DNA of 64,000 nt from Zygnema circumcarinatum SAG 698-1b. Its lineage: Eukaryota > Plantae > Zygnematophyceae. Where the stretch lies: positions 4,836,001-4,900,000 of the forward strand of contig CM074806.1 of NCBI GenBank assembly GCA_037447605.1, read 5' to 3'. The notes under the pieces were generated by a model. It made no database searches. It saw only the letters and a program-made list of their open reading frames with translations, and had not been told where the DNA came from. A program made the translations under genes and the position numbers. The first letter of the stretch is position 1; every line of letters starts with the position of its first letter. This document shows, one piece after another, positions 10,701 to 54,556 of this stretch.

Positions 10701-13700
10701 TCAAGGCAGGCTGGGAGAGCCCGCCTCCCCTACCCCGCTGCATCAGAGTGATAGCCCGGTTTGCGGTTCGCTGTCCGTCCCAGTATTGGGCCATTGCTTG
10801 GAGACAGCAGCAAATGATTCTGGAGTGGAAGGTTTTACGGTATTATCGGAGGATGAGACCGGTAAAGAAAGGGAAGGCCAAAATACGACGCAAAGCGCAG
10901 CATTTCAAACTCGATATCATAGCCCACTTGCATGTTTGCGGTCTTTCAGACTTAGCTCACGTTTTGCAACTATTTGGGGTCACTCACCAGCATCACCAAC
11001 TTGGCGAAATGTGATTGATCCTCACAAGATATTGTGCAAGTTTGAGCATAGAGGCCGCTGCAATGACAAGAAGTGCCCATGGCAGCACATTGCTCAATAT
11101 ATGGACAAGGAAGAAGTGACCTGCGATTTTTCGATGGACATAAGCTCCAACGGATGCAGTCAGTTAAATTGGTGGCTCAGAAGGGCCTCTCAGAACATTC
11201 AAGCAGTTGATAAGGTTGTTTTACACCCTGAAGCTGCGATGGTTGAGAATCATCTTGGTGGGTCGGAAGTGTCAGTTCCCCCATATTATATCGCCACTGC
11301 AGAGGCAGGCCTAGGTTTCGCAGGTGGACAAGGAGAGGGGGCAGCATCAAAGGAACTGCAACTGTTCTTTTCTCCTATGCGCCGAGGACTGCCAGCAGAA
11401 GTTCAAGTTTTGAGCAGTACTGTCAACTGCAACGATGGCTCTTTTCTCCCATCTGTAGAAAACTGCGACAAGGAGGTAGATGAAGGGGTTCGGCCGCGCT
11501 ACTTCAAGGATGGATCGAAGTTGCTCAAACAGGCTGAAGTAAGCTCTGCTTTCTTTGCCTCTTCCTTTTGTGTAGTGGCTATCAGCAGGCCCTTGCTTTT
11601 GAAGGGTGGAAAGCTTGCTGGCTGCTTGAAGAACTGAAAGACCACATCCTTGGAGATGTGGTGGTGCAGGCTCGAGTTCAGCAGGAGCCTGAGAGTGTTG
11701 AGGGTTGGCTCGACCTTGCACTGTTCCATACGTCTTACAGCCTCGATTCCAATCTGCACAAGGATGCACGCGATGAGGTATGTTCCTCTATATTTTACCA
11801 CCACTGTGTTATGGAAACAAACGTGACTATACTTACACCATTGCTTGCCCCAGGCTCATTCTTAACCACATCGTAAGCCGTGAAGGAGAGTAAAATATTA
11901 CGCCTTCAAAGAACTTGAGAGGGAATTTCGATGTTTTGCAAGCACTTGAGTTGATCGTGAATGGCTTCTGGCCTTCCAACACTCGATGCACAGAATGGGC
12001 TCTACTAGACGAGTTATCCTTCCGCACTGCCAAAAATTTAATTGTCCGGATTCACCATCATCATTGACAGCACACGAGTGTCTGTTCGGTTGGTGGAAGT
12101 GCACGGTATTAGTCAAGTCTGTCGGTTTGAGCGTTCTTCTAAGGATGGGGGATGAGGGCTTATGGGGACATCTCAGGCTTTGCGTGTTCTTGTAAGGGCT
12201 TTGGAGGCAAACCGCCGTTCAGCCACTCTTTGGAGCGTCTACCTGCTGCTCTACCGCAGCCGCACAAATGGGCCTGAAGACTATTACAACATTGTCATGA
12301 GTGCGGTATGGCTGGAAGACGGGACTGCATGCTATGTGGGCCCATTTTTATCCTCCTTCCCTGCTGATTCGACCCCACATTAGTTAGGGAATGTTTCTCT
12401 GATGATATGATTTGGGGTTGGGAGGGCATGGATTGCGGAGCGTGGCGCAGATTGAGTATAACATGGGCTCTTATGAGGTATGGAGACTGCTCCTTCACAG
12501 TCTGCCATCAGTGCAGCAGCAGCTGCGGAGTTGCCAGCAGGCCCTAGACACGCTCCCATGCAGCCCATGCAGCCATGCCATCCCTTCAGAACTGCTCAGT
12601 GCGCAGATTCTGGACTTTGCTCTCCGTTTCTTACATTTTAACTGTACAGCAGGGCATGCATCTGGGGCAATTGATTGGCTTCAAAAGCTGAAGACTGCCC
12701 TTAATGACTATAAAGAGGAATCCATGGAGGGTGAAGCAAGTCGCTTGCCAGGGTTTGGGGTTTGGGTTACATGCCTAAGTGGACCAGATTTGGCCGTGCT
12801 CTGCGTGGCTGCTGCGTGTGTGTGCGTTCAGCAGCAGCTTCCTCATGCAGTGGTTGACCGGCTTGGTTACTATCAGGCGCAGCCTCTACCGCTTGATGTT
12901 GACTGGAGAGCGTGGGACTCCGCAAGTAAAGAGCTGAAGGAGGAAACTAAGGGCTTGTGTTTAGATATTCTGCGGATGGGCATGCGAGTGGCGCAAAGTA
13001 AAGGTGGCATTCCTGCCTCTGAGTGGAACGACTGCCTTCCTGAAGGCATGACTCCCAGTGCGGCCCTGGGGGTCAATCTGGTACAGGCTATGGCCGCCCT
13101 AAAAGGCAAGGCTGCAGCTGCTGCGGAGTCTGCGGGACTACTAGCAGAGCATTCGCAGTGCCTCGAGTTACTACATTTGCATGCTAACTTGGTCTCATGC
13201 ACTGACCCTTCTGACTTCAGAGCAGCGAAGGTCGTTTGGGAGGCAGCTTTGAAAGGTTCACTCCAGGGGGGACACTGTATACTGCGGCTTTTTTGGCACT
13301 ATGCCCAGCAGGCATTTTTCAATGTTGGGTCCCAAGCTGCTCAAGATATTTTGGCGACTGCTGCCGGTCTGCAGAGTGAGGTTGCGCATGATGTTGCAGA
13401 AGTAAGAGTAGCCTTAGCCGCTGTTGTAGCAAGTAAGTCTGACATGTTGGAGCGCACTTACGGGCTCCTCTGCTTAGCCATGCTTGAAGCTTTGCAAGGC
13501 AAAGCAGCTGCAGCATTGGAGCATGCAGAGAGCAGTCTGGAGGCTGCCATCGATGCTGGGCTTTCCCACATACAGCAAACTTTGACTGAGATTGGCAGTC
13601 TAGTGCAGGCAGGATTACATGTAGCTACAGGCAACCAACCGGCCTCTCATGCGGAAATGAAGCTCAGACTGCTTAGCCGTCTCTTGGATTCCCTGTTGCG

Positions 13701-14289
13701 GAATCCCAAAACCCGTGCCAAAGTTTTCCGTCCCGTGAAGCAGCTCGCCCAGCTTCTGCAGGACGTGCAGAAGCCCCGTCTTGTGCAAGTCTTGGCAAGC
13801 CTTTTCGGGGGACCCCGGGTTGACTTCTCGTGTGCAGAGGCTCTGTTAGGGGCTGCAGAGGATGGCTCGAGGGAGCAGCGAGTCGTCACTCCAATTGATT
13901 TGAAAGCGGAGGTGCGTTTGGCGGAGGGCATAATGGAGCTCATGCCGAGCAACACTGCGGCTGCATGGCGGATTGCCGAGCAAATGGAGCGTCGGAAATT
14001 TCCTTCAAAGGCGGCTGCCATGGCGTGCTTGTGGTGGACCACAAGCCTTCTTGTGGGAACGTTGGTAGAGGCAGAGAAGGCGAAAAGGATCGATGGCTTG
14101 GAGGGTGTGTGGCTGAGTGCAGGCTTGCGGCTTGAGCAGCAGTTACAACTGCCTAAAGCAGCGCTGCAGCTCTATTCGTTGGCTGCAAAGTTGTATCCAC
14201 AAAGTCTCGCGCTCAAGGATCGACTCAGCACTCTCCAGCAGAGAACCAAAGATGTGGATGCGACACTGGTTGAGGAGAGGACAACTTAA
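4733..14289 (+). CDS. ZFC3H1: ZFC3H1/Red1-like zinc finger C3H1 protein (nuclear exosome adaptor, PAXT/MTREC-like), ~7 exons
   Basis: N-terminal REEGELS motif, long disordered and coiled-coil region, zf-C3H1 signature HSPLACLRSFRLS...IDPHKILCKFEHRGRCNDKKCPWQH, then helical repeats (ALRVLVRALEANRRSATLWSVYL). Approximate exons 4733-5129, 5416-5489, 6074-7753, 8098-11537, 11670-11777, ~12177-12306, 12442-14289. Confidence 0.85.
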
Positions 14290-27743: not shown

Positions 27744-30694
27744 TCAGCCCCTTACATGCCTGAGGAGCACTCCTTCGCCTCCGATAGCAACTTCGAAGCT
27801 CACGCACCCAATCCTCCGGAGCTGCTCCTGCAACTCCGTAACCTCCTCAGCGCTCACATCTTGGTTACTGTCAAGGTCCACCTTGGAGGATAGAAGGAAA
27901 AGGGCAAGGCACATTCATGGATCCACACAAGTTTCCATGCAACGGCCAGCATTGGACTTAACATCCACATCCATGATTCTCCAACCTATTGCAATAATCA
28001 ATTCCCATCAATTTCACCCTCAGTCAACTCGATCCTTCCACTTCACCAAAAGGTCGACCATAAACAACCAAAGGATTTGCGAGACAATGGCCTAGACGCT
28101 TTGAAAAAGACATGAAGAATTCATGATAAGGAAGGTGAGGATACGTGCCGGCAGAAGCGTCAACACACAGCCTCCTCCCCCTGCACCTGTAAGCTTTGAT
28201 TGGAGGCTGTGCTCGGCTGTAATGCTGCAGATTGCAGACAGGGCAGGATGCCCAACACCTAAAGCGTCCAGCAAACCTTGATTCATCTGTACAAGCTCTG
28301 CCAGCCTTCGTTCAACCTCCTCCGGCTGCGGACCAGTTCCAGTCCCACACCTCTCTGTTGATAAAGATTGTTCCCTTTCTGCCGCGAGAGTCTTCTCCTT
28401 TCCTGCAGGCTCTGCTATTGATGTCTTTCGTAGTAGATGCTCCTCGTCCTCTATTTTTTCCTCTCCCAATCTCGGCAAACTAGAATGAACCGTGTTCCCT
28501 CCGTTTGGATCATCCACTGTTCTGCCAAGACAGCTTCGCTTCTCACTTTCACGCATAGCAGATTCCTTTCCTGCTGCAAATTCTACAGAAGCCCCATCAG
28601 CTGTTCTCTGCGAAACCTCCATATGGCTAAATATTCTTCCATTAGCATCCTCACCATGTCCAGCAACACCAGTTTCCTCGGCGCCCTGCGCAGGACATAA
28701 AGGAACAGATGCTCCATTACACACGGCTGGGTCTTGCTGCGTGAGATTCCCAGCTTCGGCAGGTGCGATCTCTGGAACAGGGCCTTCCTCCGCTTCAGGG
28801 TTCTGTTGCAGGAGGCAAACAGCCTCAGAGGAGATCTCGTTTATTGCGGCAAAAGCTGCTGCCATTGCAGCTGGATGTTTCATTGCCCTCTCGCGCACTG
28901 CCTGAACAAGCGCGCGTGTATTTCGAGGCACTTGGCTGTTGGTTAGGAGCACTCGCAGGGGCTGTGCGCGGAGGCGAGTCATGGCGCCCCGCTGGAAACG
29001 TAGCATGCGCCCTGAACCCTTCTTACCCCATTGCTGGGGAGTGAGCAGAGTGGTTTCGCAGACAAAATGTTGACTTTCTACATCAGAGTTGTAGCCTCGC
29101 CACTGGCCACCCACGCCACGATGACGTGATTGAAGTTTGGCTGATTGAAGGCCTCTAGGTTTACTACGGGAAAGATAGTGTTAGGATGGCCAATGCCATC
29201 CCAGTAGCAAGAATAAGAAAAAATAAATAAATAAATAGAAAAATTGGCTTACTCAAAAATCGAGATTTCTTTGACCCTTCCATCTTTGTGAACAAAAAAA
29301 ACGTATATTTTTCACGCCGTTAGAATCGACAAGCATAAAAAAGTGACTTATGGCTGATGTAATGTACCATATGTGCTGACACTGTTATCGACACCGGAGG
29401 GCTGTCCGTGTAGAATCCTCTCTCCCTCATAAGCCCACGAGTTGATAAGAGCGAGCTCGTCTTCCGCCGGTTTCATCCAGCCACTCGCGCTCTCTGTGTG
29501 CTCCCCGACACAGCTTTGAAAAGTTTCACTTTGAAAATCTTCTTCTTGGCTCGCCCTGCTGTGGTCATATACTTCATCTATACAATTCTTTCCAGCATTT
29601 CCACCCCCCGGCCGGGCCCCTACGCTTTTCCCTGTGGCTGCAAGTAATGCAGCTGAAATAGCGACACAAAAAGCAGCAGACGAGCCAAGGCCCGCCCCAA
29701 CAGGAAGCTCCGTGGTCACTGTGACGTTTGCTGGAGAGTTTCTGCAAGGGAAGCAGGGCTCAGAGCAGCTCCTTAGACTCACTAAGTTGAAACTAAAAAT
29801 AAATCCTGCACTTGACCTGAAATCCAAAATGTCCCTCTGGGCTGCGGTAAGACCCCAATACAGCTTGATTAAAAAGCTCTAGACGCGGAGATAAGAGAAG
29901 AATAAGCTACGTCAGGTCGCCGCAACTCACGTGAGCAGGCGGCTGTAAAGGAAAAGAAAAGCCGTGACGCCTGCACCCAAGGAGGGCATGCATGAAGATG
30001 CCAGTTGGCACTCCGCCAACGAGCGCAATGCAGTGAGAAGCTTGTCTGAGCAAGGTCGGACTCCGTGTGCGCTCCCAATTAGTGATGTTTCTCCTTCCTC
30101 CCGCAATGCTGTGTGCAGTTCAGAGAGTGGCCATTGACAGTGGACGCCGAGAGAGGCAATGTCGAGCGATACACATTCATCTCTCCTCTCTGCACAAAAG
30201 CTATTCCAACATGCTCAGGACCTGCTCGCATAAGAGAGGGCAGGAAGACGGAAGAGCATGAAAAAGGCCTCAGGTTAAGGCACCAAATCTAGGATTCAAA
30301 AGATCTAAGCCTTCATGTCATGAAGTCGCCATGCTTCCTTAACAGCCTCGCTACGATAATCGACATAGAGGATGACGGATGCACGAGCATTCACTGCGCA
30401 CTGCGTTACGCAAATTAACGCAACTGGTTTGTCAAGGCACCCTTATCTAGTAATTGTGACCCCCTTCTCTTCATTTTAAGGTTTTTCTGCCATCGAATGC
30501 ATGTGCGGTCGACGGCTCGCACCTGCCCCTTCGCTCGTTCGACCGCGCAGCTGCACGCAGGCGGTGGTGCGGAGGTCGACGCTGGCGGCGAGAGCGGCGC
30601 TCCCGTGCACGACGGCGTGCTCGCCGAAGAGGATCACCTTTCCCGGCGCGGAAGCCTCCCACCCTCCGCCCCCGCCCGCCATGGCCATGGCCAT
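27744..30694 (-). CDS. MVK: Mevalonate kinase (GHMP family), 5 exons
   Basis: [74 protein letters not shown] and a last exon ending ...[17 protein letters not shown]. Confidence 0.95.
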
Positions 30695-30805
30695 GGCTGC
30701 CGTCCGAGGGAGGGAGGGAGGGAAAGACGGGGCCTTTCCTTTTCCCGCCCTCTGCAGCACCGCACCGCGCCGTACTGCTTGGACCGTACACAGCGCTAAA
30801 AATAG

Positions 30806-32809: not shown

Positions 32810-34981
32810 TCATCGCATGCTCGGGACAACATCGATTTCTGATTGGCTGAAGCTGTTCCGTTCCAGCCAGCTCGCCAGCAGACCAGCGGCTCCCGACTCT
32901 GACTGCCCCTCGTGGGCGCGCCGGCACTAGACAGCGCAGCGATCCAATACCTGAAATTACATTACACGCCGCCTGCTCTGTGGGCCCAGCACAGGGGTCA
33001 GCTAAAGGCTGCATTCCTCATTAATTTTAAAACATAAAATTGGCCCTTCGCTTCACTTTGCAAGCCTCTGCCTGCGCGAGTCGTGCAGGCATTTCCAGAA
33101 GTGGACTTCCGCAGTACGACTAATTCTCTCTGCTCCAAGTCAATTGGACTCTTCCCTTTGAAACCACTCCATCTGCACGCGAATTATGGGAGGGACGGTG
33201 TCAGCATTTTCAGAAGGAACAGCAAGCACTTATCCTTATTCATAATCAGATGCATATATATCCACCACAAACGTCTCAACTCCATGTTCTTCATCCAAAG
33301 GAGCCAACTCCACTCATTCGCACGTATGCGTAGAGGACAAAATTCTTTAAGAATCAGGGCCGCCTCTTCCATCAACCACGGGGATAAAAGCAACTGATTC
33401 TTGAGGGCCGCCCAGACTTGTTCTGTAAGGTGCCTCGAGAAAGGACAACCAAATTTGCAAGCAAACAGAAGGAATTTGCAAGTCGGTAAATGAAGATGCA
33501 GACGAGTAGAGCCGTGGCCTGCGAAGTATGAAAGGTCGGAGCATGAGACCCCACCTTCCATGCATACATGGCGAAAAACGCCAAAGCATCCGCTGTCCAG
33601 ACGGCCGCAAAGGACCGCCAGACAAGAGGCAGAGTGACATTGATGAGGGGAACCACAATAAAAAGATAATTTAGGGCGTCCTTCTCTTTTGACGAGCAGT
33701 CACGGGCACGCAGAGAAGGAATGGCTGCACAGAGGAAAAGCGAGAGCGTGAGGCGAGACAGTACTACTCTAAAAAAGGCATCATCTTTCCAAAGTAGAAT
33801 AAGGAAATATAACCAGGTAGCAGCGAGACTTACTGAACATCCAGATAGACCACATGCCCATGAGGCGCCAAATATCAGGCTCGTTTGATGGAAAAACCAA
33901 GTTGTAGGAAAGAACTCCCCCCAAGGCCATTGATATGTAGGCCTGCCATTCGAACACCGAGAAAAGCAGAGACCCCGGAACTGCAGGGTTCTTTTGTCTC
34001 GTTGACGACCGTGGCGCGAAGGTGCTCGCTGTGCTGCGAACTGCCTGCAGATAAGATTGAGCGAAATGGAGCATTGGGTGAGAGCTTCTTTGCTTTTTTC
34101 CTCGTCCCACTTGAGAAGAAACTGCCGCAAGCAATTGTTTAATCATCATCAACTGCACCACAAGGTGCCTATTTTCCAACAACTTTTTTCTGAAGATTTG
34201 TCTTTGGGCTGATTGTCAGATCTTCAATGCACTCTCACTGCTCCATATTTCTTTGTCAGTTTTTCGCAAACTTTTTCCCGTCTAAATTAGAGGTAAAAGT
34301 AACGGCTACGCAAATAAATTTTCTGTAGCAAATGGCACCTAAACTCTGAAATGACCTTGCAAGAACACACCTAGGCAGCCCAAACCTTTGCTGCCACTCA
34401 TCACAGCATTCCCCTAATAGCCTCGTCTGCTAAATCATGCATAAAGTTTCCGAGTAAGCACTTGGGCCCTTCCGCATAACCTTTAAAAAGCTGAACTGTT
34501 CATTTCCATTCCTCTTATTTAAAATTCTAAAACAACTGAATGATATACGCAGATGTAATGTGTTGCAGGTGACGCCCGTCACAGAAACCTAAATTCCTCG
34601 AAAATGGTGGGCACACACCGAACTCTGAAGTCACAAAAAACGGAGAGCGCATACTTTTGAGAGCTTTCGACTGATTTCGTCGCTGTCCTCCGTTTGCACC
34701 GCCTGCTCGCCCTCCTGAAGCTGCGACGCGCTGCTTCCTGCTGCCGCCTCGTCCTCCGAAGACAGCACGGCCTCCGAGTCCCTTTTCTGAGCGCGCACGA
34801 GCACCAAGCTGGCTGCTCTGCGCTGCTCCTGTTGCCCGGCAAGAGTCCCAATCTTAATTCTGCGAAATGCGGGGAGAGAGGTACCACAACTGGGTCCCGC
34901 GGAGAGAGAGCACGCTCTCCGAACGTGCAAGGAAGAGTCCAGAGGAAGGGTCGCCATGGCCGTGGGCAGTGCGGCAGCCAT
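32810..34981 (-). CDS. RPH1: RESISTANCE TO PHYTOPHTHORA 1-like chloroplast membrane protein
   Basis: Transit peptide followed by AVRSTASTFAPRSSTRQKNPAVPGSLLFSVFEWQAY...FPSNEPDIWRLMGMWSIWMF, IPSLRARDCSSKEKDALNYLF and FFAMYAWK. The last exon (~32928-32810, containing WLER) is tentative. Confidence 0.85.
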
Positions 34982-35614
34982 GAATGCTGCTGCAGGCAGA
35001 GGACCTTGTTCCGCGCCACGTGGCGCGCTGTGGCCCTGGGCGAAAGCCGGGGCTTTAGCGGCCACTTTTTATGCCAGCACGCCGTTGAACGGAACCGTGA
35101 CGGAACTGTGAGCACAGCAAGGCGACACGGAGGCTGGGCAGCGTCAAAACGTTTTGCAGAAGATCGAGGGCTCGGAGGGAGGTGGCAGCGGAGAAGCGGC
35201 TGGCGATGGACGGCGCAGATCGGCCAGGCACGCCTACCCGCCTGCCCGCGGGCAGGGCCGCTCGGCCAATGGGAGGCGGTGGGGCCTGCGTGACGGCCAC
35301 GCAGCAACGCGGGGGATGCGGCACGTGGCCGAGGGCGGGCTGATGGCGGGTGAGGGCTGTGAGGGGGAAACATGGAGGGACAGAGAGAGACCGAGCGGGC
35401 ACTGGACTGCACTGGATTTCCATGTTATCGCTAACTTTAAAAAGACAAAATTGGAGACTCGACGGCGGCAATGTCCTACACGGCCCTCTGCCAATCTCTT
35501 CTTCTTCCCTCCGCCCGGATCGAAAACAGAACTGGTTGCGGCTCGCAACATTATTGCATGCTCTGACTCGCAGCTGCAATTGCCCGCCTGCTGCGAGCGC
35601 TCTTGCGCCCCCAC

Positions 35615-36831
35615 TCAAGGCACGTACACGTGCGTCCATTCGGGCACGGCGTGCCACTTCTGCAGCCACTCGAAGGTGGCCGGGTAAGCGCGGTGGAAGT
35701 GGGTCTGCCCCATTTGCACGGACGCGCTCGTGAGGAGCACCGCCAGAAGCATCTCCGCAATGCTGCTCCCGCCGGGCTCTCCCAGCTGCCGCCCTGCAAT
35801 GCACAGATTCCATAGATCAGGAGGAGCACTTGCAGCAACACCATGGCTAACCGTCCTTTCCAGCATGACTGGGACAGGTCTCAGCTTCAAGTTGGCATGG
35901 TGATCCATGGCACAAGCAGCACTCAAGTTTGAGCAGCATGCCTCTCATGCTTCTCACACAGTCCTTGTTTGAATTGACTGGACGATAGGTGAAATGGCGA
36001 AAGCGATGAGACACACGTAGATGAGGTACCACCACAATAGACAGGAAAGATTGAAAACGGGAGGACAAAGGTAAGACCTCTCTTATTGGCAAACACAACT
36101 CACGCCGCTAACTACATAGGCACGGTTGGACTGGCCATGCACGCATAGGAAAACCTCTCTAGCAGAAGAACATGGAACACAGGAATGGTCAAGGGATGTG
36201 TATGTATACCGCTGTGAATCCAGCGTTCGACTGTGGGCAGACACAGTGCAAGGTCCTCCTGCTGCGAACCGCTCTCCGCTCGCAGCAATGCCGGCTGCAG
36301 CACTGCTGTGGCCCAATCCAGCAGCTCGTCGCACTGCGCGCGTTCCTCTGCATGCAAACACATCGCAGGAATCACTCGCATTTGCGATCACATTTCCACA
36401 GATTGGAGTAGTCATGTGAACAAATCCAACACAGCTGCAGATCGAAAAAGCACAAAAGAAGCGTCAGGCTTCCCTACTTACTGGCTGCTGATGTGGGTGG
36501 ATAAAGTTGAGGTTTGCCAGAGGATTCGCCTAAATATCTGAGGACGGTAGCAGGGCCGGACAAAACGGCTGCCCCATCGGAAAGCACTACCGACGAGCCT
36601 TCTCCTGAAACACGCCACAAGACCTGCATGTCAGAAACTTCGTTCAGCGGTTGCGAAAGGTAATGTGGGCTCCGCATTATGAATCCCTTTAGTGAAACAA
36701 CGCATACCTGCAGCCGCAGCGACACCTTCAGGTACAACAGAATCCAACGGAAGGACGTCCACGCGAGCCTTTGCAAGCGCAAGGTAAAGTCGCAGCACTC
36801 GAGCTCCAAGGTGACCATCACGAAGGTATAG
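35615..36831 (-). CDS. GST-fold domain (four exons), apparently the C-terminal extension of LeuRS
   Basis: Exons 36831-36708, 36604-36482, 36347-36210 and 35793-35615 splice in consistent phase. Translation LYLRDGHLGARVLRLYLALAKARVDVLPL...VVLSDGAAVLSGPATVLRYLGESSGKPQLYP...KERAQCDELLDWA...SIAEMLL...YPATFEWLQKWHAVPEW follows the GST N- and C-domain pattern. No convincing start codon or promoter space of its own. Confidence 0.8.
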
Positions 36832-36966
36832 CTGCCACCGGAAACAAGGACAAGGGGGTGTTCTCACATGAACCACACTCTATCGGACTGTTCTGCAGTC
36901 TAGAATCACCCTTCATTATGTCTGCGCTGCGCAGGGCTTACTTGTGAAAGTAAGTGATGAGCTGAC

Positions 36967-39900
36967 CTTGGAGCTTGTTCCCACGGGCGCAGCCAGAAAG
37001 ACAGCAATAGGACTTCCTGCAGGCCCTCACTCCCTTTGAACCCACTTTAGCGTTCATGCAGCGGCCCCCTAACTAGCCAAGCTCGACAAAATCCAAGTTT
37101 GGGTTTTCCGTAGTTCGTGGCAGAACGAACACTCAAAACACTGTAAACAAAGTTCCGCAAGGGAGCCAGTCAGCTGTAACAAGTAATCATCTCGTTTCTC
37201 TAAACGAATGAAGCGTACAACCCTAAAAACCCGGCCCTTAGGAGGTTCAACTCACCCGGAGCTGCCGTCGGAATCTTTGAGCTCTCAGGGCCAGCAAGGG
37301 CCACTGCTTCCTTGTCGGACGCGGAAAATATCTTCACCTCCTCCAACCCTAATTGTCGCTGCCAATATGGTCAAAAGTATCATGTGAGCTGCTTGAAATT
37401 GCACACAATTTAACAGGAGTGGTCGATAGTAGCTGGAAAAACTGTTTTAAAGAGGGCAGGATACGTGCATCTGACCTGAATAAGGTCCTTGTTCTCCTGA
37501 AGAACAGCAATCTCATCGAAAGGAAGCTTCAGCTCTAACGCCTGCGGCACGCACAACAAGCGATGACATGAGATTCAATTGCCCGACCACAAGTCCGGGT
37601 CAGTTGCAAATTCCGGTCAGTTGGTCAGTCAAGCAAGGGATCAGCTTGCTCAACATGGAACTCGCAGCTCAAAGCCTAGTCGCCGAAAACTATAAAGTGG
37701 GCGTATCTTTGACTCATAAACTGCCGTAAAAAAAGGCGATTTTTAGAAACGACTCTCCTTCCAACCAACAGTGACATGCTAACAGCAGACATCAACAGCG
37801 TGTTACTCACATGGGCACCATTGTTCAGGGCTTCGTCCTTCTTGAACTTCATGAAACCCATAGCGAGGCCCACAATCTTCTTTCCTTCACCCATCTGCGC
37901 CATGCCAAAGCCAGCATCACCTATTGTTATTCTCTCTTTTTTTTTTAATTTAAACACTCCTACGAGCCTTTCTGCTTCTTTTGAAACCAGGACCAAGTGA
38001 CTTCCAGGGGAATATGGAGTCAACGAAAGATTGAGAAGATCATACAGAATTATTGTCAGGCCCATACAGCAGACGTTCAACGTCTTTCCTGAATTATCCA
38101 CAGACCCTACCTTCATAAGAGGACTGGTTTTGATGGCTGCCATCAACTCAGAATCTGGAGAAAACGTTTTGGAGGAAGGGTCATAATGAGCCTGCAGGAT
38201 CTTCAGGCACTCTTCCTGCACCACCCAACGTGCCTACAACCTCAGCCGGATATCATCTCTCGCTGGCAGCAAGCCTTTCAAGTGCAAGCATTCGAGCAGA
38301 TGCAGATTTTGAAGCAGCTACCAATCACGCACCTGCCAGCCGCCATACTTTTCAGCGACATAAACAAGGGCCACAGTGAATTTTGACGCTGTTGCCGCGG
38401 GGATGGCATTAGAGCTCTTGCCTCCTCCCTTCTTCGCAGGGGTTTGTTGTTTACTCATGAGTTTTCGAAAGTCAGTAATGACATCCTGCAACCACGACAG
38501 CAGCCCAACTAAGAAGCAGACTTTCCCACTAGCTTTCAAAACCATTTGACCTGAGCATAAAAATCGCTCACACGTTGCACTAGAGAAGGAATTCTGATAT
38601 TCTCTCGTTTCAAACGGAAAGGCCGACATCCTTGACAGTTGATATTAGGCATCTTAGGGAATACCTGCAAATACGAGTTTGCGTTCTTGAATGTGTAGTC
38701 AGGGGCAGCTCCTACTGGCCACCCCGCAGTGATGGCAAAGCCGCTCTTGCGGAGGATTGTGCCCCATACATGCTCCGCATAGTGAGGGCAAATCTACACA
38801 GCCGCAAGCGAAAGCCTCGGAGCCAAATAAACCCCTCGTATTTTATTTTTTCGCTACCCACATGGAGTCTCAAGAAACACCCTGACACCGCGGGGCTCTG
38901 AAGGCAGCAGCATGGGAAGAGAAGCAGAGAGCAAACTTACAGGCGTGAGCAAACGAGTCTGAACGTCCATGAAGCGAATGGCCAAATCTCGATGCATGCC
39001 CATAACTCCACAGGACAGCTTATACTCGTCCTTTGCCAGCTGTTACAAGCGAGCCAAACAAGGGACAGGGCTCAGACGTCACCAAAAAGGCAAAGGAGAA
39101 GAAAGTCAGTGGGCACAATTTTCGCAGATTTCTCACCTGCAAGTCAAAGAATCCGGTTTTGAGAGCCTCTCTGAAGAGCATGTCTTTGTACGCTTTCTCT
39201 GTAACACTAATGGCAATGTTGATCTCGTTTTCAAAGACCCTGTCTGCGAAGGATCGCTCTGAACCATTGCGTAGACTATCAATGGCATCCATCGTCTCCT
39301 CCATCCACGCCAATTCCCTGTCATACAAGGTGCGAATATCAGGTAATGCGCACAAATACTAACTGAATGTTAAGACAAGTTGAAGAGTAGACTTCCATGA
39401 AGGATGCCAGCTTAGTGATCCAAAAATACGACAGGAAGAATGAAATCTGAGATCAATGCCTTACATGCAGAATAAGTCACTCACACGCGACAAGCACTGG
39501 CTTACTTTGTGAGCTTGAGAATGGCTGCATTAGCGGTATCCATAACAAAATTTGCATCGTCGACTGTGTCGCCCGCATCTGCCAGAGCGAAGCGTGCAGC
39601 GTCGGCTGAAAATTCCTCTGCCAAGGCAAAATAAAACCCACCAACACCTCGACATCAAGGCCTACAACCAATTATTTCAAAAACAAGAAGTTCGAAGAAA
39701 AGGGAAGAAGAGAAAATATGAATCTGAAGGCATCGTGGTAATGTCATGTAGTTCCAACGCAATCCATCCGACTTGATCTCACCTATCGCCTGTCGAACAG
39801 TCTTGAAGTTCCCGGTAGACTTTGACATCTTCTCGGAGTTGAGGAGCAGATGGCCATTCGTTCGAAATCCTCTCGGCCACTTCTCCTGCAGCCACACACG

Positions 39901-42900
39901 AGAGACTTGTCAACACGAGGACGACACCGTGCAGAGGCTTAAACTCTCCTTAAATGGCCAAAGCAGAATGCGATTGTCAATTGATGCACGCGAGTTGCAC
40001 ATGAACGTCATCGAAATGGAAAAGGAAGTTGCCTCTGGAAACAAAGCGGTGTGGTTGTAGATGGAGAAGGTAAGATGGTTGTTGATCAGGTCCTTCCCCG
40101 AAACTCGCAAGTCAAATGGGTACCAATAATCGAAGCTGCCCTTCAACTCCTGTTCGGGATTCATGACATTCCAGCAGGCATTAAGTAGCACAAAAATCGC
40201 GAGAGCTGAAAAGCTTAGCGAGCTTTAATCTTTTACAGGCCTGCAAGGTGCTCAAGTGAACCAAAAAATTGTCACACTTACGTGCGCAGACTATCATGCA
40301 AAAAGTAAAAGGCAGTCTGTCATGGGCACCCTCACCTCCAGAACGGCCTTTGGAATATTCGTCTGAGGCATAGGCTTGTCCAAAAACAAATAGTCCCAAA
40401 CCTCTGGTGTCATATGCTCCGGTTTTATTGGACCATCCTTCTTCCCTGTCAGATCCCCTCCCTGTCAAGCCCAAACTAGCTTCAGTTATGGAAAATTAGG
40501 CGGCAAATCCTGAGAGGGCGTATGCCAGAAATTAGGACGAGATGCTCCGGCAAATGAGAGGGAGAAACGAAGCAGGAAAGCAGGAGCAGGGTCGACAAGT
40601 AGATGCAGACATTTTTACAAGGGAGACATAGAATGCCAACCTGCAAGACATGGGCCACAGTGTAGTAGGCCATATAAATAGTTGAGTCTGATAATGACTC
40701 GATGAGATATTGCGGGTCCCACGGGATGCGTGTTCCGAGTCCGAAGGAGCGTGAACAGGCCCACTGACCCTCCCAGGATGAAAATCAGCCATCAACTCTT
40801 TCTGCTAGCTATCTAATGGCTGTGTCTGCAGAAAAGTCAGAGCTACTCGAAAACGATTGCATCCATAATGCCTTTTTGGGCTGCCTTCTGAGTACGAGCC
40901 TATTCTGCATACCCTGGGCTATGGAAACCATAACAAGTGCATTGATTGGCAAAACATGAAGTACAACATCTTGGGTAGAGACGCGGCAATACCCTGTCCA
41001 ACCATCCGAGAGTGTGCTCAAACCCATGCCGAGTTTCATCACTGAACAGTTCCATATTCTCCAAGCACTGCACCGATTTGGCCTTCCACTCATCTTCTCC
41101 ATACGTCAGATACCTGTCGCCACCCGAATGTTCCTATGTCGGCAAGTGACCGGCTTCCACAATAACAAATAAGCACACAGTTCAAGCAAAGAAGGCTAAA
41201 TGCATTTCCTTGCCACTGAAAGGCTATGTCCACCGGCCTGCAGGGGGGCGTACCATTGGTCAGTGAGAGCAACGATGCACTCATCTCCAGAGCGAGACAT
41301 GACTTTTTTTTCCGGCTCGCTGTATTGCACAGCTTGGCCGCGTTCCAGCAGCAACTGGTCCACCCCATGCCGGAAACATAGGAGTACAGTTTAAAAGCAT
41401 GTAAGACCGGAAGGGGAAGGGAACAAAAGTGCAAAGTCTACAGGAATGGCCAGCCGGATGGTTTAAAAATGCATGACCTTATGGCAAAAAAAACCCACGA
41501 GAGCACCCATACAGCGTTTATAGGCTAGCATCATTCCCAAAAAATGAATCACTATTCCCACGAGCCCTTGCCCTTGACTAGCTTTGAGCCATCGTCCTTC
41601 ACACGTGTATAAGCCGAACATGAACTGCCCACCCCATCTGACGACTTGGCCAAACAATGAAACAAATCACCCTCACATGCCAACGCCCAGGCAAACGAGC
41701 TGGCCTCGTAAAGTGAACTGCAAGATCTCACCTTTTTAATGACAGGTTTGGCATCTTGCACCTTCTGACCCTTGTAACCCTCCACCAGCATCACTCCATC
41801 TGTGAAGCCCTTGAGATAGGTCAACCTCTTCGCTTCTGCCAGCTTCTCCTTGTCATTTTGGCTCTTGATGCCCAGGTCTTGGCAGACCTTCTCAGCGGCG
41901 ACATCCCCAAAGCCCGGAATATTGATGATCGGAATAACCTCGAAAGGCAGGACCCACTCATCTTTCACACCAAACTTCTCGCGCAGAGCTGCAACAGAAA
42001 TAAGGGGTGCAGGAAAAGCTTCAGTGGTGAATAAAGTTTAGGCCTTATCTCAATGCCGTATTTCAACCATTCATACACTGCTCTCCAGAAAGGCCACCCA
42101 AAGAGGCAAGATGGGGCACTTACCGGGTTTTTTCTTCAAGTCCTGCAGAGCCATATAATCGTCTGGAGAGTCGCTGGGCACACTTGTGACCACACCAGTT
42201 CCTGCAGCCCCGCGAAGGTGGCCTCAGTTCCGTGCAGAAGGGGGGCAATCGCCAAAGCAATAGGGCCTACAGCTCGAGGAAAGCTCACCTTTGTCTGTCA
42301 AAATGGTGAGCATTGGGAGGGCGTATATGACAGGATGAGATGTGAGAGGTGACTTCAGGGGTAAACCAATGAGATCGTGCCCCGTGAGATCCAAGAGTTT
42401 TTCTGGTTTTCCCCATTCCTGCAGATCAAAGTAAGCACGCATCCGAGTGGTACCCGTCAATGACGGTATCAGTGTTTTAATTGATTAGATGTTAGAAATA
42501 CCCAAATAATGCAATACAGTAAAGGTCTTTTGAGCTATAAGTTCGTGCTAGTTGCACACTTTTCTTTTCTGCACAGCAGTTTTGCCCACACCTTGACTAC
42601 CAAGGCCTAAGCACTACACTTGTGGACTACAAAGGCCTCCATTACAGCAATGGCCGAACCCCTCTCATGTAGAACCTTTGTATCGCCTTCAAAACAAACG
42701 AAATGGCCCTAACTTTGGCACTGGTCTAACATTACGCAGAATTTGCCCACCTTTGCCAGAGTTTGAAAGGACATGTTGAGAGCAGCCCGGGCAGTGACAA
42801 TAAAGACATCGGCTTCATTCACAGCAAAGGCTCCATATACGCCGTCCGGTAGCACCCAAGCATTCGTCTGGCCAGCCATGGTTTCTGGTCGCAGCGTAGC

Positions 42901-45900
42901 AGCAGCAAGAAACACATGCTTACCAGCCAACGCTTCAAGTTTCCCTGCACATAGATAACAACTCATGGTTTCAATGTCTTGCTTGCTTGCTCGCTCCATG
43001 TAGGCAGGACATTTACCCCACCTTGACTTGGAGACGTGGCAGTTTTTCTCCCTTGCTAAAGGAATCCTTTGGAAGGTTGAGTGCAGTAAGCACCTGTGAA
43101 GGGAGGCACAACCTCCATCTTAATGAGAGTATACTCCTGCGGCAGCACGCCCTCGCCGGCGGCTCGGTCGTGATCTGCGCAGGGCTGCATTTGGGCAGCC
43201 CAACAGGAAGGCAAAGCTCAGAGGGCCCTCAACCTCATTCACAACGTTCGGATCAGAAATGGTAAGGAAACCAACTGCCTTGCAGCTACATGGTGGAGTA
43301 GGCAGCACTATTTCAGGAAGTTACAACTCAGTTGATCCTCCTCACAATGAGGCCACAGAAGGCATCACAGGTTAAACAATGACGGGAAGGATGGTTCGTC
43401 GACTGAGCAATTTTGGAGCTGCTTCTAGGTTTGAAACAGCTGAAAGTTGTGAAGAAGTAGCTAAAAGAATGGTGAGACTTGTTCATATGCTAATCATTTT
43501 CGCTTCTTTAGGGTTTCCGAGGCTAAAAAACCTCAGCGGAAATTGACATGTCTTATTGGAATACGATATATGGCGCAATGTATGTTTGCCTGTACGAATA
43601 TCTATCTGCGCATTTGGTGTAAAGGCCAAAGGACTAATGTGACACACCTGGCCATCCAATGGCGAATAGATGGTATACCTTCGGTCTTTTACCACCTGCA
43701 GCCGAACGTTTCCCAGGCCAGGTGATTCAGTATTACATTAGATGCAAAAGCAGAACTGCAGTCAGTCCCAAAATGCATTCCTGAAAAGCAATTACCAACT
43801 TGAGTTTGCGAAAAATAACATACGGAAAGTGGAATGCAAGCTACGCTGGCTACGTGGAGTAGAACTATGATCTTGACTCGCTTTGCCCAGGTTCCGGAAA
43901 GCCACAATGATTTTCAAGCCGGACTATTATACAATCACCAATGGCTTCAGGTTGTGTCAGAGGACCTAAAAAGTCCCCATTGACTGAGTAGTAGCTTAGT
44001 GCTTCGTTCATATTTGCATGTCTTTCTATTAACACGATTAAGACGACCCAAAAAAGGCTCTTCAATATTCATTTCGGAGTGAACTGGATATAATGCGACC
44101 TCAGGCGCAATCAGACCTACACGCCGGTCTAACGCCGTTTTTGGACACCTGAAAGCACCGAGCATGGCCAAAGCTGGCTCACCCCTGTTCAGCTCATAGT
44201 CTTCTCAACTGACAGCCAAAACACATGACATACCTTGCCCATATTGTACAGTGTTTGGAGTTGCCAGCGGACAAACGAATCATAGAAAGGATTGGCGTCA
44301 GTGGTGATAAATGACCGTCTCCAGTCCACACCCATACCCATGGCCTTGAGATCTTCCTGCTCCCATAGGCAAAGATTACTCATATAGCCGTGATGAGTCA
44401 TGTATCTGCACCAGAGGTAACTTGCAGACGACAATAGATCATCAACCATGAAGCTTCACCCAGAGAGGAGGTCAGGCCTGGCTCTGCCAGGGGTCTTACA
44501 GAAACCTAACCTTAGCAAGCTACCACTGCAGAATGACATGGCTATCTGGAAAAAGGCTGTCTTTGAAAAACCGACAACGTTAGCAGACGAACCAGTCAGT
44601 CAATAGTGGAACGAGAGGCGAACAGTGTGAAAGGCAATGAGAAAGAGCGCATGCAGCAATACGCGTTTTGAGAACTCACGATGGCAAGAGGAGGGAAGTA
44701 GTTCAGCCAGTGAGCTGCGTCACTGAACTTTGCGATTTCTTCTTCTGGCAAACCCATTGCCCTCATAATCTGCCACTGTTTACCCAAGCACATCAGCCAA
44801 CCCAACACAGGTCAAATTCGAACAGGAAAGTGCAAAACGCACGTCTGCTTCTAGAGCTCTAATTCCCAAAAGAAACGCTCATTATTGTCTCGAGCGCTCC
44901 AAGAGTTTCATTATGAGTGTCCTGCTTTTATTCTATTTTTAGTCGTGATGAGACTAGTTTCACTCTATAAGTATGCATATATGAATATGGATTGCATCTA
45001 TCCTCGGATTCTCTCACAAAGGGTTGTTGTATGCACTCTCAGAAATGAAGTCCCATTCTTTTATAGATTCTATAGCTGGGACCACTTATCCTTAGGATTC
45101 CTTAACCTCCAGCACACTCCTCTCTCAAATCGCAGTCATTTGTATCTAGAAGGACACACAAGGTGAGAGAGGAAAAACGAGATGAGACAAAAACTACGGG
45201 CAAGAGTACATGCCTGGTACTTCGCTGATCCACTCTTGGCCGCCGCTTTCGACTGCAATTAGCCGACCCAACTCACAAGATAATATTTTAATACACATGA
45301 TGCTTGTCAGCCCTTTCAATGCTTCCGAATGATCATACTAAGCAAGGCCAGCTATCCCGATGCTAGCAAATTCAAGGTTATTCGATTGACATGCTTAGGT
45401 CAAAAGCATGAATCTCAACAGAAGAATAAGAAAATGACTGTCTAATTAGCGACGAATCACAAACAGGCCTGCCCGCTGACGGTTGACCAGAGAACGGGCA
45501 GGAGAACCAACTGACCCAAACTTGCTGAATGCCTTTCTTTCTGAAAAATAGTCACTTCAGCCTGACAAATATTGCCAAAACCGCAACCAGAAAATGCCTT
45601 GTAGTCTATCCATCACTGGCCTCCTTAGCATCGTCCGGAGTGCAAAGTTATGGGCTAGGAAGCGAGGCCATCAGCAAAACCAGAATAACGTAGCATAATA
45701 GGAGCTGTGAATCTTCCCTAGAAACAAACTCACCTTCTTGCTCTTAAACTTGGTCGGCTCCCCTGTTTGCTGGGATGGCGAAGCCTCTGCTGCCACAGGT
45801 GGTTGCTCTTCAATCTCAGCATCTTCCTCCGAAGGGAACGTCGGAGGGTTTCCAAACATCGCAATTTCCCTTCTTAGCTTATCCGCACAAGCCTGTGATG

Positions 45901-47281
45901 TCAAAACACAGTCACGAACTCACAGTCACATTCACGTGACGTAAATGGCATTACGTCACGAACTTCCACGCAATGGTGCACGCACAACGCAAGTTTGAGA
46001 GAGCAGATGTGAGGCACCTTGATAGGCATGCCAGTGCAGTGGAACCCGAAAGGGAAGAGCACATTGTAGCCTTTCAATCGATAAAATGCTGCAGCAAATT
46101 CCAACTGTCGGACAGCAACAAACATACAAAAGTCAAAATCAATGGTCCCACAATGACCGCATAAACTTTCTCTCCGACTGATTGAATATATGGAATATAT
46201 AGACTTTTCAAGAACACCCAAGATTTGTAAAATAAAGCCATTTGGAACACACCTCAGAGCTTTTCAATTTTTTTAATTGCCGTCTCAGAATTTACCGAAT
46301 TTGGATTCAACAATGAATGACATGCACATGATCCATTAGCTTTAACTCCATCCAACAATTAAACAGAAACATGCGGAACCTCGGCAATGTACAGGAGACA
46401 TTGGCTTTCCAGAAAAACGGACATAAGTTTTTATCTCGTAAACTTCAGTTTTGTTCACTTCGGCGAACCAGGGCACATACTTTCTCGCCCAGTGCAAAAA
46501 GTTAAGGTGGCATGTTCTGAATGTTTAAATTGATTGAGTACAACACGTTAGAACAACTTCATGTAAGACATGGTACAGTCTAAAGGTTGACATGAGAAGA
46601 GTATAGCGAGGGGAAGGATTAAAAGGAGGAGGAAGAATTATGCTCTCAAGCTTGGCGCTGTTAAAAGCTCCTCATTCGCGCTAGACAACACGGCATCAAT
46701 TTTTAGGCCTTAATAGCAGATTGCTGCGAACTATGATGTTTAAAAAAAATATGAAATTGTACCTTGGTGAGGGTGAAAGCGTGACCGAGATGCAATAGGC
46801 CATTCATATAAGGGTATGGAAAATTGCCAAAAAATTTCTCCCCATCTTTGGGCTTCTCGCGCTTTGCCTCCGCCTCAAACACTTTTCCTTCGTCCCACTT
46901 CTTCTGAACCTCGCTCTGAATTTTAAGAAGAAGATCGCGACGGACATGACTTTTTGGCTCCTGCGTGTTGGAAAACGCTTCACCAGAATGAGGCCAGTGC
47001 AGTCTTTAATGCGTGTCCAAATTCTTCGCTCAGTCCGGTGAAAAAATGAATAAGCCGCAATACCAGATGCTCTCTGCTTACAGTATGCCATAACTAAGAT
47101 GCATAGAATCGGAGTTGCCTGATTAAGAGGTTTTTTTGGAGAATCATTTGAGGAAGCTAATTTCGAAGGTTACAGCTTAGAAATTTGAATTATCCTCAAG
47201 CATCTGGATAGGTCGATGCAAGCTGTCACAAAATGAACGGTGTAGCGGTGAGCTCACAGCTTTGTCCCCCACTGCCGCCAT
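36967..47281 (-). CDS. LARS1: Leucyl-tRNA synthetase, cytosolic (multi-exon); probably continues into the GST domain to 35615
   Basis: [14 protein letters not shown] (HIGH-type), [41 protein letters not shown] (CP1 editing domain), [29 protein letters not shown] (KMSKS) and a plant-like C-terminal PGSPIAVF. Confidence 0.97.
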
Positions 47282-53336: not shown

Positions 53337-54311
53337 TCACGAGCTGAGCCCCATTACACCAGCTCTTTGAACAACATAGTTGCAAGACGATTGTGGCAAA
53401 TGAGGAGCAAATATTACTTGCATCCGTCGCCTGGGATTGGTATCTCCTTCGCTAACTCCTTGCTCAGTGCCATATTGCATGCTTGGGGAAAAGAATGACG
53501 GAAGTCTTGAAAGGAGAATTCTGCTAGTTACACAGTTGGCCCAGCCAAGGCCTAAGGCTGGCATATAGCGACCTTGACAGCCGTTCATACACATTAGAAT
53601 TCCTTCACAGCTAGCTTCTTTGTCAGTCATCGAATCAGTCACCTGGTTCGTGATCACAACAGCCAAATCATACTGCTCTGCATACCGCTTCAAGCAGATA
53701 GATAAGCGGAAAAGCGCTGCAGCTCTTTTGGACAATTCTGCTACATTGTTATCGAACTCTGTCCGGAAAAGGTTTGCCAGGGAGTCAATTACAATAATCT
53801 TGACTGGAAAACGAATGGGCTGCTGCAACCGTATCGGCAACAGCCACTCAAGATACCCTTGCAGCTCCTGCATAGTCTTGAATTCCTCCAAAAACACGTT
53901 TTCACAGGGATCACCTGTGGCATTTGAGGTGCTTGATATTTCCATCTTATCAGCCGCTTTCCAGCCGATACGACGGCTGTATAAAGGAGCAAGCTCTTGC
54001 AATCGCTGGAATGGGAAACGGCCTTCAGTGTAAATGTAAAGAGCGCTTCCGGCTAAACCACCGCAATGAACAGGCAGCTGCACAGTCAGCGCAAGCTGCA
54101 AGCACAACTGCGTCTTCCCAGCTGTACTTTCACCTGCCAGCTCTGTCACGCTTCTTGTAGGAATGCCTCCCCCCAGCAGACCGTCCAGAATTGCGCAGCC
54201 AAGCGTGCACTTGGAGGCGACGTCAAGAGAGGAGAGACGCCTTGGCAGTACCTTCCTGCCGCCCTGCTCGGCCTCCAGAGGAAACAGCGGCGGTGGCACC
54301 TGCGGCCGCAT
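53337..54311 (-). CDS. XRCC3: DNA repair protein XRCC3 (RAD51 paralog), single coding exon
   Basis: KCTLGCAILDGLLGGGIP, Walker A GESTAGKTQLCLQL, LYIYTEGRFPFQRL, Walker B IIVIDS, VVITNQV, PALGLGWANCVTSR and a C-terminal RRMQVIFAPHLPQSSC typical of XRCC3. Confidence 0.93.
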   Translation of the reverse strand: MRPQVPPPLFPLEAEQGGRKVLPRRLSSLDVASKCTLGCAILDGLLGGGIPTRSVTELAGESTAGKTQLCLQLALTVQLPVHCGGLAGSALYIYTEGRFPFQRLQELAPLYSRRIGWKAADKMEISSTSNATGDPCENVFLEEFKTMQELQGYLEWLLPIRLQQPIRFPVKIIVIDSLANLFRTEFDNNVAELSKRAAALFRLSICLKRYAEQYDLAVVITNQVTDSMTDKEASCEGILMCMNGCQGRYMPALGLGWANCVTSRILLSRLPSFFSPSMQYGTEQGVSEGDTNPRRRMQVIFAPHLPQSSCNYVVQRAGVMGLSS

Positions 54312-54556
54312 GGAGGGAAGGCCCTGCACCGCTAGTGCAAACCCTCAAGGCGCATTGCGCAGAACGCAGAGCGCAGAGCGCAAAGCGCAAAGCGCACAAG
54401 CGGGAGCGGAGCAGGCCGGTCCGAAGGGAGGAAGATGGGCGCAGGTACCGTTCTTGCGGACGCCGCGGTTCGCGCCCGAGGGACGCCCTGCGGTTTTTCC
54501 CGCCATAGGTGGTAGTGGAGTGTGCGGCCTCTCCGTCCCGCAGCCTTGAGGGAGCG

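Follow-up and report, generated by a model that had tools for sequence, protein, structure and literature searches.

A GST-fold domain fused to the C-terminus of cytosolic leucyl-tRNA synthetase in Zygnema circumcarinatum

The window analysed here is a 64-kb (64,000-nucleotide) stretch of DNA from the green alga Zygnema circumcarinatum SAG 698-1b (contig CM074806.1, positions 4,836,001 to 4,900,000). On its minus strand lies the gene for the cytosolic leucyl-tRNA synthetase (LeuRS), which has an in-frame C-terminal extension of 187 amino acids. Is this extension a genuine part of the synthetase, what kind of domain is it, and what might it do for the enzyme? The gene is found to encode a single protein of ~1,280 amino acids, in which an intact cytosolic LeuRS is followed by a 9-residue linker and a compact glutathione S-transferase (GST)-fold domain without a glutathione site.

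Gene structure and transcripts

The features of the gene, all on the minus strand, are as follows.

36967..47281, minus: cytosolic (archaeal/eukaryote-type) LeuRS core, intron-rich, with presumed start ATG at 47281 (tblastn, motifs and RNA joints)
36967..37016, minus: last canonical LeuRS exon (PGSPxxxFL strand) and 9-residue linker; land-plant LeuRS ends just past this motif
36832..36966, minus: junction intron between LeuRS and GST domain, 135 nucleotides, phase 0, GT-AG (joint in 4/4 runs; same position in Spirogloea P0207)
36708..36831, minus: GST-fold exon 1, beta1-alpha1-beta2 and following helix (RNA; aligns to Spirogloea tail 11-51, p 0.012)
36482..36604, minus: GST-fold exon 2, beta3-beta4 and LRYLG helix, with cis-Pro and Glu-Ser positions replaced (RNA; Spirogloea tail 54-80, p 0.001)
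36210..36347, minus: GST-fold exon 3, RAQCDELLDW helix and next helix (RNA; Spirogloea tail 94-130, p 0.0005)
35615..35793, minus: GST-fold exon 4, N-cap SIAE, central helix, Y..TFEW helix and stop (RNA; Spirogloea tail 138-168, p 0.0085; ESM Atlas 0.96)
35403..35614, minus: 3' untranslated region (UTR), poly(A) sites near 35417 and 35403 (poly(T) loose ends, runs X4 and X5)

The core is that of an ordinary cytosolic LeuRS (LeuRS-A), with full-length homology, class I HIGH-type and KMSKS motifs, the CP1 editing motifs, all intact, and an anticodon-binding domain. Its exons from 46966 to 37245 are matched in order by poplar and prasinophyte LeuRS in tblastn searches, and the Spirogloea muscicola ortholog scores above the TIGR00395 cut-off. 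Exon 37016-36967 closes in phase 0 at AAG/GTCAGC, after which comes the 135-nucleotide intron 36966-36832. The four extension exons (124, 123, 138 and 176 nucleotides, plus the stop) add up to 561 nucleotides, or 187 codons, are mutually phase-consistent and contain no internal stop. A GTCAG donor is also used at 37475 of the same gene. The splice sites, phases and donor at ~37475 described in the original prediction, which had been made from the letters of the window, agree with both the sequence and the RNA joints. The core also contains a GC-AG intron of 147 nucleotides (39886-40032, minus strand, donor AG/GCAACT), whose RNA joint occurs in 4/4 runs.

Seven public sequencing runs contain 36-46% of the stretch's words, a share in line with spliced RNA. 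The run records have no RNA label; spliced joints and poly(A) ends identify the runs as RNA. Contigs from four runs, representing three studies, were compared with the gene. In every one of the four, one contig (4028-5329 nucleotides, depth 76-265) holds the 36967/36831 joint together with every other extension joint and upstream LeuRS exons, bearing out the predicted in-frame fusion. RNA joints cover the LeuRS exons from 40464 down, and transcripts of two runs have poly(A) ends near 35417 and 35403. A separate GST gene is ruled out by these continuous contigs and by the absence of any Met codon from extension exons 1-3, which would leave such a gene without a start before helix 5.

A normal, short LeuRS made by retention of the junction intron had also been proposed. 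Reading through the intron does give a stop 16 codons in, judging from sequence only. However, no such form was seen among the contigs of the four runs, an assembly that drops rare forms: no contig lies inside 36832-36966, and the bin 36740-36933 has the depth expected from exons only (4/4 runs). Because the joints lie on one contig in four runs and this bin stays at exon-only depth, the fused LeuRS-GST form is the main transcript.

Contigs of low depth (2-12) that contain introns were observed at 35794-36209, 37017-37255, 37542-37810 and 37895-38110, probably reflecting unfinished splicing. If retained, intron 37017-37255 would end LeuRS 17 codons in, ahead of its last strand. The next gene (34800-35400, minus) begins only ~350 nucleotides past the LeuRS poly(A) sites, and a contig of run X2 spans both.

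Fold and glutathione site of the tail

The fold of the Zygnema domain itself is judged from evidence gathered exon by exon and from natural homologous tails, those of the LeuRS of Spirogloea and of Prasinoderma coloniale. Exon 4 alone scores 0.96 to GST_C clusters by ESM Atlas features, a level reached by ~1 in 100 shuffled proteins, and its ten best named matches all belong to one clan, that of GST_C. All four extension exons align in order to the Spirogloea tail (shuffle p 0.012, 0.001, 0.0005 and 0.0085), and when the tail profile was run against 2338 six-frame pieces of the window, exon 3 came out best (E 0.002-0.005). Searched one by one against Pfam and PDB sequences, the extension exons returned nothing useful, and a metagenome scan with exon 4 gave no match. 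The only match of exon 4 in a 1.84-billion search (P0001) was rejected as a repeat-driven chance match.

By sequence, the Spirogloea tail matches solved GSTs in the PDB (E 8e-5) and, weakly, Pfam GST_N_3 (E 0.02). Its AlphaFold model (predicted local distance difference test score, pLDDT, 60) has an ordinary GST as best structural match (Z 10.2 over 157 residues, root-mean-square deviation (rmsd) 3.5), and nearly all of its best 50 structural matches are GST-fold; an Atlas shape search with this low-confidence model gave no useful match. The Prasinoderma model (pLDDT 80) gives GST matches at E 2e-4 and Z 13.8-14.3 (rmsd 2.8 at Z 13.8). Both homologous tails are predicted to have a thioredoxin-like N-subdomain and, after it, a helical C-subdomain, an arrangement indicated exon by exon in Zygnema. 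The predicted GST fold of the extension is thus well supported by the exon 4 Atlas score, the Spirogloea exon alignments and the models of the homologous tails.

In an alignment with PDB GSTs, the Glu-Ser pair is replaced by Gly-Pro in Zygnema, Gly-Thr in Spirogloea and Gly-Ala in Prasinoderma, and in none of these tails is beta3 preceded by Pro, the cis-Pro position being replaced. The three have no pattern of catalytic Ser, Cys or Tyr in common, so that the glutathione site of catalytic GSTs (cis-Pro loop, Glu/Gln-Ser pair, catalytic Ser/Cys/Tyr) is missing. The cis-Pro and Glu-Ser residues are thus lost, as noted in the original prediction, and for this reason the tail probably has no enzymatic activity. 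An active glutathione transferase fused to LeuRS is very improbable: the best structural and sequence matches are indeed catalytic GSTs, which also dominate the PDB, but every tail examined has the glutathione-site residues replaced and conserves no catalytic Ser, Cys or Tyr.

An N-capping box, S/T-x-x-D, at the central helix is a feature of the GST fold (PMC9136112). It is SIAD in Spirogloea, which fits, SIAE in Zygnema, a near match, and is lost in Prasinoderma. The best-conserved residues of the tails are those of the LR(Y) and LD(W) helices. In GST-like heterodimers, interface 1 is formed by the helix-2/helix-3 face (PMC9136112); with the LR(Y) and LD(W) helices forming interface 1, the conserved face would be the dimer face.

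Distribution and origin

The module had been thought new to this lineage, but it is also present in the LeuRS of Spirogloea and Prasinoderma. The Spirogloea protein (P0122, EukProt EP00850_P017139, 1238 amino acids) was reached by walking through LeuRS homologs and has a 177-residue tail at the same place; the Zygnema protein itself was not among the matches of either LeuRS search. A homeolog model with an unspliced intron (P0207) places that intron at the same phase-0 LeuRS/tail junction as in Zygnema. Prasinoderma LeuRS (P0208, EukProt EP00793_P000260), intronless on TARA contigs, has the tail, as does the LeuRS of a marine relative (P0049). The linker between LeuRS and tail is 9-11 residues across Zygnema, Spirogloea and Prasinoderma. 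The LeuRS-GST architecture is older and wider than first supposed. Although the Spirogloea and Prasinoderma proteins are deposited in EukProt, the precomputed Pfam annotation shows no GST there. The tail falls below Pfam cut-offs, and therefore more carriers probably stand unannotated.

The land plants sampled lack the tail, and so do the sampled Chlorokybus, Mesostigma, Mamiellales, Pyramimonadales and core chlorophytes. The tail was also absent from the Closterium genome and transcript, and no GST remnant was found downstream of Closterium LeuRS. Just upstream of the penultimate exon used in that gene (L021/L022, ~28040-28580) are two degenerate tandem copies of it. In Pycnococcus provasolii LeuRS (P0030, 1530 amino acids), the region after the core (residues ~1090-1515) begins with a 200-residue segment that is GST-like by eye, followed by a Lys/Gly-rich linker and a conserved-looking 175-residue domain that matches nothing in Pfam, NCBIfam or the PDB. 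The GST-like insert, plausible by eye, failed profile tests and was left out of the distribution.

The tails of Zygnema and Spirogloea are of common origin, because the junction intron is common to both. The Prasinoderma connection comes from profiles. When the profile of the Prasinoderma group is aligned with the Spirogloea tail, the match extends over 134 columns (hhalign 88.7%, E 2.6e-6); a profile search gives 24 bits. Against the PDB the same profile found no GST at E 10. A region search with the Spirogloea tail, limited to 8000 candidates, found only that tail. The match between Prasinoderma and Spirogloea favours either a single ancient origin followed by many losses or two separate gains, both from one green-algal donor family. 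A FastTree phylogeny of 43 LeuRS cores gives the expected species grouping, with Spirogloea, Closterium and P0081, the closest LeuRS relative found, in one clade sister to land plants. This tree requires at least two changes for the tail, and by it the gene's host is most likely a zygnematophyte. The P0081 sequences come from runs SRR8128902-8, which may belong to the Svalbard Zygnema mat study (PRJNA498913).

Proposed role and comparison with known systems

The tail is best read as a docking module that would anchor LeuRS in a complex of synthetases or elongation factors, a reading given a probability of roughly 0.55. It is suggested by the lost glutathione site, the conservation pattern and precedent: to our knowledge, all characterised GST-like domains on synthetases mediate complex assembly. 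The catalytic body would charge tRNA-Leu as usual, while the tail, on its short linker, would present a GST-type dimer face, probably helix-2/helix-3 (interface 1). This face might pair with another GST-fold translation protein, such as GluRS, an Arc1p-like scaffold or eEF1B gamma/beta, and the pairing would tether LeuRS to the multi-synthetase or eEF1B complex. The tail should be dispensable for leucylation itself, because most green plants do without it. Yeast and human synthetase complexes are assembled by GST-like domains, and ValRS is tied to eEF1B in the same way (PMC4394549). In plants a megadalton multi-synthetase complex with an ARC1 ortholog and GluRS has been described, in which LeuRS is possibly peripheral (bioRxiv 10.1101/815837). 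A bolder and distinctly tentative extension is that an ancestral green-plant multi-synthetase complex had LeuRS in its core, held there by a C-terminal GST-fold domain that belonged to LeuRS itself.

Several observations weigh against a docking role. P0081, whose core is 83% identical over the exons tested, has no tail; its transcripts polyadenylate ~290 nucleotides past the short LeuRS end, and no GST remnant was found in its 3' UTR. The tail evolves fast, with ~33% identity between Zygnema and Spirogloea over aligned stretches versus 68% for the core. Structure searches put ordinary GSTs level with or above EPRS and eEF1B-gamma, and PDB sequence searches do not single out scaffold-type domains either, in a database where catalytic GSTs dominate. 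The special likeness to the GluRS-type domain suggested in the original prediction does not stand out among the structures and sequences compared. For example, the weaker Spirogloea model gives Z 8.7 for EPRS and 8.9 for eEF1B-gamma versus 10.2 for an ordinary GST; across both models, eEF1B-gamma matches have Z 8.9-11.8. The sole lean toward the scaffold type comes from the Prasinoderma tail, whose top Atlas rows are Arc1p_N-like/AIMP3 clusters (0.82-0.83, a lead only). Like scaffold-type GST domains, the Zygnema tail has no glutathione site and is fused to a translation protein, but it is C-terminal rather than N-terminal on its synthetase. Lastly, an Arg used in interface 2 presumably lies on helix 7, just before the last Trp. 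The residue before the conserved Trp is Glu in Zygnema, Thr in Spirogloea and Ala in Prasinoderma, so that this Arg seems absent from its presumed position.

Patchy presence and fast divergence, together with the N-cap box altered in Zygnema (SIAE) and in Prasinoderma, would also suit a decaying, functionless passenger that is kept because it is harmless. This has a small chance of being correct, given a four-exon reading frame that has stayed open, complete splicing at depth 76-265, and fold-defining residues that Zygnema still shares with the Spirogloea and Prasinoderma tails across a very long separation. It is unlikely, though somewhat less so, that the tail acts within LeuRS, by homodimerisation or as a built-in solubility or stability domain needing no outside partner. 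Self-pairing of GST folds commonly uses interface 1, the face conserved in the tails, and the interface-2 Arg for second partners seems absent from its presumed position; on the other hand, eukaryotic LeuRS is monomeric (PMC4394549) and works without a tail in most plants.

The tail directly follows the Pfam RBD_LARS1 region, and non-catalytic ligand binding is possible for GST folds. Both would fit a regulatory module outside translation, serving redox or ligand sensing or TOR-type signalling beside a RagD-binding-like domain. With the glutathione site lost and no Cys or Ser conserved at the catalytic position across the tails, such a role seems improbable.

A docking module on LeuRS would resemble several known cases. 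AARS Online lists GST domains on CysRS, GluRS-E, MetRS and ValRS only (PMC11580382), to which Apicomplexa add a GST-bearing GlnRS with the domain N-terminal (PMC10813123); a GST-like domain on Plasmodium GlnRS is described in PMC9136112. In Arabidopsis a GST domain is listed for GluRS only (PMC7564348). The domains on GluRS/EPRS, MetRS, ValRS, CysRS and GlnRS share with the Zygnema tail a class I cytosolic host, a compact size of 170-190 amino acids and the lack of a glutathione site. In Zygnema, by contrast, the host is LeuRS and the domain C-terminal, whereas the synthetase domains of yeast, human and Apicomplexa are described as N-terminal (PMC4394549, PMC10813123). Arc1p, AIMP3/p18, AIMP2/p38 and eEF1B-gamma have the same fold, but these carriers are not synthetases; AIMP2 provides a precedent for a C-terminal GST-like moiety (PMC4394549). 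Mammalian LARS1 is a functional analogue, since it enters its complex via a C-terminal appended domain (PMC4394549), but that add-on is a different, non-GST domain (PF22947 in fish sequences). Land-plant cytosolic LeuRS has the same motifs and a core 64-67% identical to that of Zygnema, but ends at most ~30 residues from the PG.P..F motif and has no GST domain. Spirogloea and Prasinoderma LeuRS, with the same architecture and a homologous tail, are database entries for which no paper was found. The original prediction knew of no LeuRS with a GST domain, and no description was found in the literature searched, which covered few subscription papers. LeuRS-GST is a real, expressed architecture and apparently undescribed: the type of module is familiar, but the enzyme that bears it and its placement there are new.

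Other genes were observed in the window. An intronless Rad51-family (XRCC3-like) open reading frame of ~324 amino acids lies at 53337-54329 (minus) in an otherwise intron-rich region. Exons of a GHMP-family kinase, mevalonate-kinase-like by eye, occur at 28095-30760 (minus). A large gene at 6038-14286 (plus) has very long exons (618, 1248 and 627 codons) and a zf-C3H1 zinc finger.

Eukaryotic multi-synthetase complexes are built chiefly from GST-like domains, whose published carriers include neither LeuRS nor any synthetase with the domain at its C-terminus. Some green algae have the tail and close relatives lack it, and these natural with/without pairs let the recruitment or release of a synthetase be tested.

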